A DNA stretch of 64,000 nucleotides from assembly GCA_964035545.1 (NCBI GenBank), contig OZ037765.1, positions 2,790,001 to 2,854,000 on the forward strand, written 5' to 3'. The translations under genes and the position numbers were made by a program. Positions within the stretch are counted from its first letter, which is position 1. Every line of letters starts with the position of its first letter. Shown here piece by piece: positions 20,461 to 64,000 of the stretch. The notes under the pieces are model-generated. The model saw only the letters and a list, made by a program, of their open reading frames with translations. It was not told the DNA's origin and searched no databases. This DNA is from Bugula neritina. Taxonomy: Eukaryota > Animalia > Bryozoa.

Positions 20461-23400
20461 ATGGACAGAATACTGTACTTGTGTTTTCACTTATCTTTCT
20501 TTCTAGTTACCGTGTCTATCCCTGCACTAGTACAAGGTATGTTAAATATCATAATTATTATACTTGTAGTTAAATTTAAGAGGATTTTTTCTAATTTAAC
20601 TTAAAAACAAAAAACTGCTGCCCTAGTTGTTTCAAGTTTGCAAAACACTAAACAGAGACTATAGTTTATTTCAATGCTTTCTGTCCTTATATATTATATG
20701 TAAATAAAAAAAAATCTAGCAGATAATAAATACTCTGCTGCCACATATTTTCAGGACTAACCTGTGACTGGACATCAGGTGTGGGTAGACTAGATCCTTA
20801 CATCACATCTGGTAGAATAAAGACTCTCTTTGTAACCAGTGAAGATGAGTGTAGAGCTCAGTGTATGCAGCAGACATCATTTATATGTGCCTCAATAAAC
20901 TACAGAACTGATGATGGAAACTGTCAGCTGTTAGCAGAGAATACTCAGACTGCTACTATTAGTAGTTCTGATAGTCAGTGGAGATACTCTGTTAGACCAG
21001 ACTGTGCTGGTCAGTCTTTGTGACTTTGATAATGCAATGTGGTAGCATAAGTGCATTATATAGGTGTACTAGTTTGGTTTAGAATAAAAAAAAAAAAAAA
21101 ATATATATATATATATATATATATATATATATATATATATATATATATATACATTATATACATATATCAATCAGGCTGCTACTTTTGTCCTGCTATAAGG
21201 ACTACTTAATGGAGATCGATCTAGGATATTCTTTGATTGTTTATAATAGTAAAATTATGTTATACTTCATTTCAACGCGTAATTTAATATGCTGCTTATA
21301 AGGCTTCACAGCTATAGTAATTCTGCATAATAAATTTACTAGCAATACCAGACTAAATCGAAGCACCTTCTAAATCCTTTTTTCAAGAAATAAACAGATT
21401 CCTAAAAATTGTAAATCTGAAAGACTATTTATTAATTATATTTTTGAACAGCAAGTAAAAATGAAGTATGTGTTAATATGTGTTAATATGTTGGGGGTTC
21501 CGTTATTCTGTCTTGCACACGAAATCTTATGTATTTCACAGAAATCTGGCAGCCATGGACAGCTACTAGAGGTTACTATCTAAGCAGTGGAGTAGAGAAG
21601 TACAACCAGACAAGTACATCAGACCTCAGAGACTGTATGAGTTTCTGTTTACAAGATGAACACATCAGTTATAACTGTAGTTCTATAGTGAAGGCAGTGA
21701 GTGGAGATCTATGTGAGATTGTCAACAAGAGATCAGATGGTACTGGAGTGACATCAGATAAGCATCCAGGCTATCAGTACTTTAACCTCCCTCTCTGGTA
21801 TTCAGGTATGAGTAAATCTTTAGATATTTAATTTGTATATCAACGTGTTTAGAGATATGAATTTTCTTATTCTGTAGCGTGAATATATATACAGTATTCT
21901 TAATCTTTATATACATCCTTAATCTTTAACTTTAGGTTGATCTAGTTGTGGTCTGACAACTTTTAAGTAACTTTATTATATATTCCTAAATATAGCAGGT
22001 AGTAGAAATCAAAGATCATAATTAGATATCACTGCAGCACAAGAGATGGCTCTGCACACAGCAAATTTTTACTTTTTTTATTTTTGAAATAGATATGATA
22101 TATGAACACACCTTCATATTGAGTTTTGCACCATAAATTGAATACTAAGGTCAGCTAGCATTACAGCATGGAGAATAGAAAACTTGATTAATATAATATG
22201 GTATGCATATGTCATGATAATGCAAATGTAACAACATATTAATATAATAATGGCATTCTACAACTAACCTAAACTTTTACTAAATAATATATATACAAGA
22301 GTTGTAACATACACAATGATGTGATAAGTAGTTCTAATTAAATAATAATTATTTTGAATGTCATAATAATGCATCATAGAAACTGGACAGATTATAATAA
22401 CATCATATAAATATTAAAAATGTTGATAACTCGAAGCACTTTTGCTAGGCCACTATGAAAATACCTTTATAGAATACTTATTATTGGGTATAAACTATTT
22501 TTCAGATAACTCTGACAGTATAACCAACACAAGGATAATAAACTATGGATCAGCTTTGTATGCTTTCATGTTACTCTTCAACTATAAGATAGAAGCAGAC
22601 GGATATTTGGTTGGCTGGAAGTATATGATTGGTCGTTCTACTGACTACTGTGACTCATATGCTGCTATCTGGAGACAGACAGGAGAAGGTAACTCTGCTG
22701 TATTCAATCTGATTACAGAAACTCTCCTCACACCTGAAGATGTATCTACAGGAGGAATCAGATTCCAGTTTGTACAGAACTCTACAGAAGTAGTTAGAAA
22801 AGGAGACTTTCTTGCTCTGTATGTAGAAGACTTGAATATATCTTTTTGTGGAGGTAACCTCGTCTCATTTAGACCAGATGTAGATGGAGATCTATCAGCT
22901 TACTTACGCAGGAGGAATCCTAACAGAGACAGAGCAGACAGACTCACAGCTTCAGATGTTAACGCAAGACCTAGAGCAGTAGCACTGAGAGCCTACATAG
23001 CAAGTAAATTTCCTTTAGCAAAAAATGTAACACTCTATAAAATGTATTCAATAGTTCTATAAATTATTCACCATATTTTATGCTTATTAGAAATTCTGAA
23101 ATTGGCTGGAGACCCAGTATCTTCTCACACAGATGTTTCGCCAGGGGAAATCAGAATTACATGGGAATTCCCAGCTACTGCACCCAATCAGGAGCTCACA
23201 ACTACACACTTCGAAATAGAATGTTCAGACAACTCCAACTTCAACACAATAATAAGCTCTAAATTAGTCTCTATAGACTACAGAGAGACTGTAATTAGTA
23301 ATCTGAATATACAACAACCTTACTATGCTAGAGTATCTACTGTGAGGAATTATAATGGTGAAGAGTTAATACAAGATGTCTATACAGTCAGCTCTCTATT

Positions 23401-25395
23401 CTGTGCAGGTCAATAAACTTAACTATAACTATAATGCGCCTAAAATACGTTGTTCATTCAAATATTTAAATATTCTTAAGCCATCTTGTGTAAATAAGTG
23501 AAGTGAAGATGTAGAGTTATGTCTTCAGCATTCAAATCATTCGTTTATCTTGCACATATTACTTTCTTCACTGTACATTACAGAATAAAGTTCTATTTTG
23601 AGATATAATATGTTACTTTTACCTATCAGTCAACATGTAAACCATATAATCTTTATATTAATATCAATTACACTTCTATAGTTTATATCACTCATGATTT
23701 ACTAAATCACTAATTATTTCATTCTCATATATTATACAGAACGAGGCAAGTTACTCCCTGGAGATGTCAGCATAACTGAAATCAAAAGTTTGGAACTAGA
23801 AGAAGAAAGAATAATAGTTGTGTTTGTACCTTCACTAGTACGTTTTATTTTCAGGTTTTTACTTTTAAATTTATTTTTAGATATGTAATAATTAAAATTC
23901 TAATTGTATAATTTTCAAACTGTTTCCTAATATTACTTATGTATGTACACAAATTATGTTTTGAGTTAGAAAAACTGCAATGGATTTACACTGTGTATCT
24001 TTTATACTTTTCAGCATTGTATTCGTTTAGAAGGTTATGATAATACTTACTTTTTGAATTATATAAATACCTAATTTGCTGTAACAGGAAGCTGATGACT
24101 GTGTATCCAGTGTTACATTAACTTATGGAAGTGAACAATTGTCCAATCAGATAAAGACAGGATTATGGATTTTCACTAAAAAGCAAGGTGTGACCTTTGA
24201 ACTGACTATTAAAGTACAACTACAAGATGGACATGAGAATGTAGTATGGCAGCAAGAATACACAACTAGTAAAGGTAAGTAAAAGTTATTCCAAGTAATA
24301 TATTAGGTGTCATGTGGGAATGACGGTACTCTTATACATACATGAGCCTTGTTTGTCTATATTTTATATCTCTATGATTATACTAACATTTTTTCGCAGA
24401 AGCTGTGTGATGTGAGGTTGAAACTTGCATCTCCACACCTCCCCGTAACTAAATAAATTAAATTACACTTATATATAAGAGTAACATTTATGTCATCAGC
24501 TTTGATAAGTTACACAGATTTTAAAACATGCTAATATATTATTTAGCTATTCTAGCTTTCAGTAACTATATAAGTTCAATACTGCAAGTAATAGTTTTGT
24601 CTTCAGCTTTAATAAAATTGCGCATAATGTTATTTTTTGCTGCTTCAGTAATTCAACCAATCAGATGCTCAGAACCATCTTCTGTGAAAAATACAGCAAA
24701 ACAAGTATCTAATGACATCTGGAATGTGAACTCAACTGTGTTTTACTTCTGCAATGAAGGATATACAAGACAGGGTCCTGCTATCATCACATGTCAACTT
24801 AAAGATGGTGAAGGAGAATGGTCTGACAATCCTCCTACCTGTGAATTGCCAAGTTCAGGTATAAAAATAAATCAAATTATGAGCTGTTACATGATAAAAA
24901 CAAACTGCCGGCTTAATTTTGATAATTTTCAAGTGTATACACAATTGTAATTCAAATTTGCTCAAAAGAAAACTTTTAAACTTTTTCCGAATATAATAAA
25001 TTCACACACACCTGATAATTTTAAATAGCAATGACAGATTTGTATTTTTTGTTTTAGCAGCAAACTGGCTGGTTGGAGTAGCAGTTGGTGGTCCAATGGG
25101 TTTCATTGTCATTCTACTAGTAGTGATTCTTATTGTGGTGTTGGTGAGAAGATCTTCTGGTACTGAGTCTGAGGAGAATAGAGCTCATGAGTTTAATCCT
25201 AAATATGAAGAAGTGGGATTAACACCTACATCTTCTAAGAATCAGGGTGCTGCACGAGATGAACCAGTACAAAGTGCTGAGTATGAGACAACAAATCCTC
25301 AGGCTACATCAGATGATCATGTCTATGAAAAAGTAGCTAAACAGATAGAACAACCCTGCTATGAAAACACTTCAACGATCCAAAACAAAGTTTAA
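20461..25395 (+). CDS. Receptor copy 1: SP-PAN-PAN-variable beta domain-FN3-FN3-like-Sushi-TM-Tyr-motif tail, 747 aa, intact
   Basis: Exons 20461-20536 (signal MDRILYLCFHLSFFLVTVSIPALVQG), 20755-21009 (PAN: CRAQC...CASINY...CQL), 21542-21805 (PAN: CMSFC...CSSI...CEI), 22506-23003, 23091-23408 (FN3-like), 23740-23837, 24088-24274, 24649-24858 (Sushi: C...FYFCNEGY...ITC...WSDNPPTC), 25058-25395 (TM+tail). All introns are GT-AG and phase-consistent; 2244 nt with no internal stop. Confidence 0.88.
21101..21151. repeat. (TA)n microsatellite in copy 1 intron 2
   Basis: Perfect AT dinucleotide run preceded by poly-A. Confidence 0.95.
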
Positions 25396-63684: not shown

Positions 63685-64000
63685 GTGAGTAATAGATTAA
63701 AAGGCATCTTTTTAAATTAACTGTCAAATGTTACGCCCACTTGATATACTACATGCTCTGCAAGTTACCAAAGACACATTTGTATATTATCTTGTTGCAT
63801 CCTGGAGTATATATCCCCGTTACAAATTATGCCTATGATTTACATACACAGCGTCATTCATTTTTACGCTGTAACATACCCTGGGCATCTCAAACTTTTT
63901 AAAATAACCCTTAATAGAAACACTCAAAATTTTGGGTGAAAATTTTTTTCAACAGGGCAGTTTTTCATATGAATATATTTTATGATATGAGTAAATATAT

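Follow-up and report, generated by a model that had tools for sequence, protein, structure and literature searches.

Tandem tyrosine-tail receptor genes of the bryozoan Bugula neritina form a phosphatase-less branch of a type IIb-like receptor phosphatase family and may serve non-self recognition

The DNA analyzed here, 64,000 nucleotides of contig OZ037765.1 (C1 in the following, positions 2,790,001–2,854,000; "the window") from the 216 Mb genome of the bryozoan Bugula neritina, is AT-rich eukaryotic DNA with about 30% GC. From position 20461 of the window onwards, it contains four co-oriented, multi-exon paralogues that lie head-to-tail on the plus strand. The encoded receptors consist of a signal peptide, two PAN/Apple domains, a jelly roll domain, two to four FN3 domains, an optional Sushi domain, a single membrane span and an acidic tail with three to six tyrosines. 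Since the ectodomain from the PAN domains to the FN3 domains is also found on tandem protein tyrosine phosphatase (PTP) domains elsewhere in the genome, the window genes belong to a type IIb-like receptor phosphatase family, in which they represent the branch without the enzyme. We propose, with a probability of roughly 55%, that they belong to a bryozoan-restricted receptor family with a dual-output repertoire, for which non-self recognition would be the most likely task. That the family acts in immunity or allorecognition is a conjecture drawn from sequence.

Comparison of the window with itself by BLASTN yielded short blocks that are repeated four times with 85–94% identity, while the DNA between them is mostly unalignable. 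These blocks are the exons, and their mapping bore out the four head-to-tail paralogues that had been claimed in a preliminary description of this DNA; all of them lie on the plus strand. The queries of all searches were individual exons or database proteins. Copies 1, 3 and 4 are intact, with AG/GT borders, consistent phase and no stop codon in any exon. Copy 1 (20461–25395, plus strand) is a short form of about 740 amino acids. Copy 3 (37831–46111, plus strand; about 888 amino acids) and copy 4 (50798 to beyond 64000, plus strand, ending 1,646 nt past the window) are long forms without a Sushi domain. Copy 2 (27155–35971, plus strand) has all 12 exons and is a pseudogene, in agreement with the claim that one copy is broken: an in-frame stop (TGG>TAG, 30397–30399, plus strand) replaces a tryptophan of the jelly roll domain that is invariant in 29 intact paralogues, and a 2-bp deletion near 31982 (31980–31984, plus strand) shifts the reading frame in the first FN3 domain. 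Each copy is opened by a signal-peptide exon of 25 codons with a phase 1 donor, which in copy 1 starts with the ATG at 20461, and all introns are in phase 1 with the sole exception of a phase 0 intron within the third FN3 domain. Because the module exons are in phase 1-1, their gain or loss preserves the reading frame, which explains the modular differences between the copies.

Exon 2 encodes a PAN_1 domain with six cysteines (37 bits; cut-off of PF00024 21.4 bits). A marginal second PAN domain with four cysteines is encoded by exon 3 and scored 21.5–22.2 bits in copies 3 and 4 and 18.7–19.4 bits in copies 1 and 2. Exon 4 comprises 498 nt for a domain of 165 amino acids without any Pfam match, which we call domC. 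The following two FN3 domains are barely visible to Pfam, but in an AlphaFold model (predicted local distance difference test, pLDDT, 78) they resembled the tandem FN3 pairs of neogenin and NCAM (Foldseek, E ~1e-7). The third FN3 domain is split over two exons, and the corresponding region of P0054 scored 40 bits against fn3. The fourth matches Fn3_PTPRU of Pfam (E 5e-9) and contains an RKKR furin site that copies 2, 3 and 4 share with a 3' gene fragment downstream of copy 4; copy 1 has no counterpart of this module. The Sushi domain (PF00084) reached 43.6 bits in copy 1 and 36.3 bits in copy 2. The last exon codes for a hydrophobic membrane span, the residues RRSS and the acidic tail. Copy 1 is without the three exons for the third and the PTPRU-type fourth FN3 domain, copy 2 contains every module, and copies 3 and 4 are devoid of the Sushi exon. 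The tails of copies 1 to 4 contain 4, 6, 3 and 5 tyrosines, respectively. The number depends on whether a YEE[VM]GL..PTS.KNQ cassette is present once or twice, and in copy 3 the terminal CYENT is missing because of an early stop. Together with the loops of domC, whole modules and tail tyrosines make up the three levels of variation that had been described before.

The description of a four-copy cluster was correct in that the genes form a tandem array, but the array runs on past the fourth gene. A census by exon-by-exon searches of the genome gave 35 matches for the domC exon, 36 for the first PAN exon, 23 each for the PTPRU-type FN3 exon and the Sushi exon, and about 24 for the tyrosine-tail exon. 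The family thus comprises at least 35 genes, most of which form three arrays within 1.4 Mb while the others are dispersed. Array A (C1, 2.81–2.89 Mb, plus strand) includes the window and consists of six genes plus the 3' fragment; this fragment and two of the genes lie past the window. Array B (C1, 3.24–3.48 Mb) contains 17 genes, mostly on the minus strand, and array C (C1, 3.95–4.23 Mb, plus strand) contains nine genes at a distance of 1.1 Mb from the window. One gene is located on contig C2, and two distant copies, 32–35% identical in domC, are located on contig C3. Of the domC exons, 30 were sampled, and all but one proved to be open and flanked by conserved splice sites; stop codons were found in a few other exons of array B. 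The 3' fragment between copies 4 and 5 (C1:2,858,174–2,861,234) comprises the third FN3, the PTPRU-type fourth FN3 and the membrane span plus tyrosine tail with two cassettes, without exons for signal peptide, PAN domains or domC. The earlier characterization as clustered single-pass receptors with non-catalytic tyrosine tails was upheld by these data. The family is lineage-restricted and, with its pseudogenes, gene fragment and module loss, shows features of birth-and-death evolution.

In contrast, the statement that the domain combination could not be matched to a named family did not hold. The ectodomain of the window genes recurs on tandem PTP domains in array C, on contig C3 and in the database protein KAF6029364.1, "Ptprm [Bugula neritina]", the 1,300 amino acids of which comprise domC, four FN3 domains with RKKR in the fourth, a membrane span and two PTP domains. 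Exons for membrane span, juxtamembrane region and PTP domains follow the fourth FN3 domain in 9/9 genes of array C and nowhere in arrays A or B, and the WPD loops and HC(X)5R signatures (HCSAGVGRTG) are intact in all nine phosphatases. No PTP exon was found in 2.79–2.90 Mb or 3.24–3.48 Mb of C1, and the last exon of the window genes is the tail exon, which closes with TAA. Both paralogues on contig C3 have the order PAN-PAN-domC-FN3 followed by PTP exons, indicating that the phosphatase form is old. Phosphatase and tyrosine-tail genes have all ectodomain exons in common, with 75–93% identity. According to the genome-wide match positions, Sushi exons occur only together with tyrosine tails, and Sushi plus tyrosine tail form a 3' cassette that is confined to the phosphatase-less branch. 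In phosphatase genes at four array C loci, the end of the exon that precedes the P-loop exon (..SYK.AIIHC) is repeated one to three times in the intron between the two, and some of these repeats are open.

Outside this genome, the profile of domC had 53 matches among 1.84 billion proteins, nearly all of them exon-sized fragments. Only two were named proteins, KAF6029364.1 and XP_067947407.1 from Watersipora subatra, which with 685 amino acids is a short tyrosine-tail form like copy 1. Its tail conserves the HVYEK motif and contains one VSYLEI, and a homologue search with this protein found only itself. A contig of a more distant eukaryote (ENA ERZ4903317, 5549–15147, GC 43%) carries three domC-like units, two of which are each followed by FN3, and then a weak PTP match, indicating that the link between domC, FN3 and PTP reaches beyond Bugula and Watersipora.

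The bryozoan family resembles the type IIb receptor phosphatases PTPRM, PTPRK, PTPRT and PTPRU in its type I membrane topology and in its four FN3 domains, the last of which is of the Fn3_PTPRU type with a furin site. Members in array C and on C3 also have the tandem PTP domains, and the best scores of the first of these (D1) among single-domain PDB entries were those of PTP mu, kappa and T. The N-terminus is different: MAM-Ig is replaced by PAN-PAN-domC in the bryozoan family, and no MAM or Ig domain was detected by Pfam in the window genes at E <= 1. The window genes furthermore lack the phosphatase and end in an optional Sushi domain, membrane span and tyrosine-motif tail, and dozens of tandem paralogues contrast with the few conserved genes of type IIb. 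Considering this kinship, the family might consist of cell-adhesion or developmental receptors like the type IIb and IIa phosphatases. In budding, zooid polymorphism or neural wiring, the expanded receptors would then serve as a code by which cells recognize each other, and the copies without phosphatase would act as decoys or modulators of those with one. The type IIb layout fits such a function, as do the strongly conserved scaffold of domC and the loop sets kept by orthologues (see below). However, PAN-PAN plus a lectin-like domain in place of MAM-Ig does not, and both an extensive tandem expansion accompanied by pseudogenes and the loss of modules and a ratio of nonsynonymous to synonymous substitution rates (dN/dS) near 1 in the loops would be unusual for developmental receptor phosphatases. 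We regard this explanation as rather unlikely.

The AlphaFold model of domC, based on an alignment of 49 sequences, is all-beta with a pLDDT of 91.6 and a predicted template modelling (TM) score of 0.88. Foldseek detected no match to the model in the PDB at E <= 0.001, a shape search of the atlas gave only TM scores below 0.5, and a profile of the 49 sequences had no sequence match in the PDB. In an exhaustive structural alignment, the highest score was that of a phage tail-tip domain (Z 10.3 over 158 residues), ahead of a cyanophage capsid protein with Z 9.9 and the lectin-like domain of Cwp84 with Z 9.1, followed by carbohydrate-binding modules (CBMs), F-lectins, PHR and SUN domains with Z 5–7; language-model features placed domC nearest to the Lectin_like and PHR clusters. 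We interpret domC as a jelly roll of the lectin/CBM-like kind that has no close relatives. Its predicted fold can be aligned with lectin- and CBM-like beta-sandwiches (Cwp84 PF18560, CBM6/32, F-lectin, PHR, SUN) over 105–158 residues with Z 5–10, whereas the sequence identity is as low as 2–12%. Binding of sugars by domC is suggested by this likeness. An assignment of domC as a MAM domain was rejected, as there was no Pfam signal, no profile match in the PDB and no MAM structure among the top 50 fold matches.

The domC equivalents in the four copies are 82% identical, with all differences falling into patches. An alignment of domC from the 29 intact paralogues has 66 invariant columns, and 18 positions have an entropy of at least 1.5 bits, 14 of which lie outside the strands (Mann-Whitney p = 7e-7). 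With the exception of one recent duplicate pair, every paralogue has a unique combination of loops at the hypervariable sites. The domC tree is star-like with phosphatase and tyrosine-tail genes intermixed. Well-supported branches require the tail class to have changed three times or more, and in one case a phosphatase gene is sister to a tyrosine-tail gene at 97/91 support. Either the two classes have exchanged ectodomain exons, or repeated swaps of the tails have taken place. Within domC, the PHI test gave no signal of recombination (p = 0.46).

A second source of Bugula sequences, JGI metagenome sample 3300002729, contained contigs with the same tandem arrangement, syntenic to array B and its flank. 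This source groups with the B. neritina protein in GenBank, as P0001 from a JGI/IMG contig falls into a 90% cluster with KAF6029364.1. The identity between our genome and the second source is only 73–86%, and 84–86% in a flanking stretch with a sulfotransferase-like open reading frame (ORF). The second source therefore represents another species, and the differences are no measure of polymorphism. The flanking ORF (C1:3,233,156–3,236,959) was called with 441 codons and a faint Sulfotransfer_2 match in both sources, with 84% nucleotide identity, and marks a conserved boundary of the array. Two syntenic orthologue pairs keep their paralogue-specific loops, with a dN/dS in the variable third of 0.36 in one pair and 0.93 in the other. 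Preservation of the loops across two Bugula species points to retained, paralogue-specific specificities. Concerted evolution was considered on account of a seemingly species-specific framework variant and discarded, as the framework of this genome also occurs, exactly or nearly so, in 17 further fragments of the second source and the synonymous divergence of the framework was alike between paralogues (0.085) and between species (0.03–0.10).

Bryozoans form colonies, and fusion, rejection and kin-biased settlement occur in this phylum; type IIb receptor phosphatases bind homophilically. It could be assumed that the genes are strict histocompatibility determinants, polymorphic alleles of which decide on fusion, rejection and kin-biased settlement, probably via homophilic binding of the receptor tips as in Hydractinia Alr1/Alr2. 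A clustered family with a hypervariable surface domain, for which the nearest known family is homophilic, in a colonial animal of a phylum in which the molecular basis of allorecognition is unknown would fit this assumption. The variation described here was, however, measured between paralogues and not between alleles, and conservation of the loops in the two orthologue pairs, at the dN/dS values given above, is more typical of fixed specificities. Moreover, 35 genes with unique loop sets resemble a repertoire more than one or two polymorphic loci. Retention of the loops speaks for a polymorphic allorecognition locus no more than for a repertoire with fixed specificities, and we consider strict allorecognition determinants unlikely.

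As in Hydractinia Alr1/Alr2 and in fester and uncle fester of Botryllus, clustered single-pass receptors of a colonial invertebrate vary in their membrane-distal domains, and fester also has a Sushi domain. The folds differ, with Ig-like domains in the former and PAN, lectin-like and FN3 domains in the bryozoan proteins. Alr1/Alr2 and fester are defined by allelic polymorphism, homophilic binding and linkage to a fusion phenotype. The likeness to KIR, LILR, NITR and the FcR-like receptors of Xenopus consists in tandem multigene clusters in which related ectodomains are connected to opposite signalling outputs, with pseudogenes, module loss, variable numbers of tail motifs and tail classes that are intermixed in the tree. 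Unlike these, the window genes contain neither Ig domains nor canonical motifs of immunoreceptor tyrosine-based inhibition or activation (ITIM or ITAM) nor a charged residue in the membrane span: the span of the window genes is purely hydrophobic and offers no charged residue for pairing with an adaptor. The negative arm would be an intrinsic rather than a recruited phosphatase, and no bryozoan pair with matching loops was found.

If the proposed dual-output repertoire exists, the tip formed by PAN-PAN and the jelly roll would bind glycans or glycoproteins via its paralogue-specific loops. Cleavage at the furin site would convert the long forms into a two-subunit ectodomain. Engagement of a ligand may then lead to phosphorylation of the tail tyrosines by Src-type kinases and to docking of SH2 proteins. 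By resemblance, YEEV/YEEM would come close to the Src-SH2 optimum and YENT would be a Grb2-type YxN motif; HVYEK is conserved. Paralogues with a phosphatase tail would give the opposite output, and both tail classes together could form a recognition repertoire directed at microbes, symbionts or conspecific tissue.

Several of our results weigh against this proposal. The fold matches of domC fall into a very common class of beta-sandwiches, and a shared fold is no proof of sugar binding. We found no pair of a phosphatase and a tyrosine-tail gene with the same loop set, the best match being 10 of the 18 sites, so that strictly paired receptors for one ligand are unsupported. None of the motifs in the window tails (YEEV/YEEM, YETT, HVYEK[VL], CYENT) fits a canonical ITIM ([ILVS]xYxx[ILV]) or ITAM, and the SH2 partners are consequently guesses from motif resemblance. 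For domC, the dN/dS was 0.75–0.79 over the whole exon, 0.03–0.3 in the framework and about 1–1.7 in the patches, and relaxed constraint on the patches would be compatible with the latter values. In parsimony-based, SLAC-like counting, three sites reached p < 0.05 before and none after correction. The term "diversifying" in the preliminary description is hence supported as diversity between copies and not as positive selection.

These values raise the question whether the family is subject to largely neutral birth-and-death turnover, in which the copies without phosphatase would have arisen by truncation and be on their way to loss by drift, and the variable patches would be loops under no constraint. 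A patch dN/dS of about 1, one dead copy among the four in the window, stop codons in several exons of array B and the 3' gene fragment between copies 4 and 5 are what such turnover would produce. It would not account for open reading frames and conserved splice sites in 29/30 sampled domC exons, the low dN/dS of the framework, the conservation of tail motifs as far as Watersipora, an array that is syntenic in a second species differing by about 15% in flanking DNA, or purifying selection on the variable third in one orthologue pair (dN/dS 0.36). We judge predominantly neutral turnover to be very improbable.

In window coordinates and on the plus strand throughout, copy 1 consists of exons for the signal peptide (20461–20536), PAN1 (20755–21009), PAN2 (21542–21805), domC (22506–23003), FN3-1 (23112–23408), FN3-2 (23740–23841 plus 24092–24274) and Sushi (24649–24858). 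Its terminal exon for membrane span and tail (25061–25395) contains RRSS as stop-transfer and the motifs YEEV, YETT, HVYEKV and CYENT, followed by TAA. A conserved block upstream of copy 1, a putative promoter or 5' untranslated region (20259–20460), is 83% identical to 26959–27154 and also present at about 37615–37830. In copy 2, the exons are located at 27155–27230 (signal peptide), 27777–28031 (PAN1), 28434–28697 (PAN2), 30287–30778 (domC), from 31734 (FN3-1), 32244–32345 (E4b), 32675–32857 (E5), 33303–33415 (E6), 34139–34349 (E7), 34620–35009 (E8), 35132–35341 (Sushi) and 35532–35971 (membrane span plus tail, with duplicated cassette). Copy 3 has exons for the signal peptide (37831–37906), PAN1 (38199–38453), PAN2 (39602–39865), domC (41258–41755), FN3-1 (42110–42406), FN3-2 (42684–42785 plus 43132–43314), FN3-3 (43668–43780 plus 44242–44452), the PTPRU-type FN3-4 with RKKR (44628–45020) and membrane span plus tail (45837–46111). 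For copy 4, the signal-peptide exon (50798–50870), PAN1 (52861–53118), PAN2 (53889–54152), domC (54777–55274), FN3-1 (61540–61839), E4b (62108–62209), E5 (62597–62779) and E6 (63572–63684) lie within the window, and E7, E8 and membrane span plus tail lie outside.

Several repeats lie in the introns of copies 3 and 4. A (CA/GT)n microsatellite in copy 3 (45303–45797) occupies the place of the Sushi exon of copies 1 and 2; here and at 43329–43700, long microsatellite or minisatellite tracts are composed of (GT/CA)n and a 15–18-nt repeat. The introns flanking PAN2 of copy 3 contain inverted repeats with 90–94% identity, and the one downstream of PAN2 also contains a tandem duplication of about 200 bp that is 99.5% identical; these repeats are located at 38743–39169, 40476–41109 and 40567–40965. 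In copy 4, a 6.3-kb intron between domC and FN3-1 harbours an inverted repeat of about 1 kb with 91% identity (56312–57296 and 59016–60008) without any ORF with a Pfam match, which is probably a foldback element or an element with long terminal inverted repeats. Clusters of medium-sized ORFs upstream of the receptor genes (6392–7400, plus strand; 8846–10951, minus strand) had no Pfam match at E <= 0.01. Their interpretation as degraded mobile-element genes between 6.4 and 11 kb was judged by eye only and received no support from Pfam.

To our knowledge, no recognition molecule is known from Bryozoa. The sole lead in the literature that we searched was a remark on weak similarities to Alr1 in the B. 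neritina genome paper. The present family provides concrete candidates, with a hypervariable domain for ligand tests, tail tyrosines for signalling tests and a natural contrast between phosphatase-tailed and tyrosine-tailed paralogues. With regard to evolution, it indicates that a receptor phosphatase can lose its enzyme and then expand as a docking receptor, and that symmetric phase 1 exons allow the loss or gain of whole modules with the frame unbroken. A more specific and tentative possibility, to which we give clearly less than an even chance, is a bryozoan-specific self/non-self system of loop-hypervariable, lectin-like sensors that are wired either to an intrinsic phosphatase or to a phosphotyrosine-docking tail, with the balance of outputs deciding on the response. 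Such a system would be a functional analogue of the activating and inhibitory receptor pairs of vertebrates with the enzyme inside the receptor, and the balance of its two outputs would set the response of the colony to allogeneic tissue, symbionts or pathogens.

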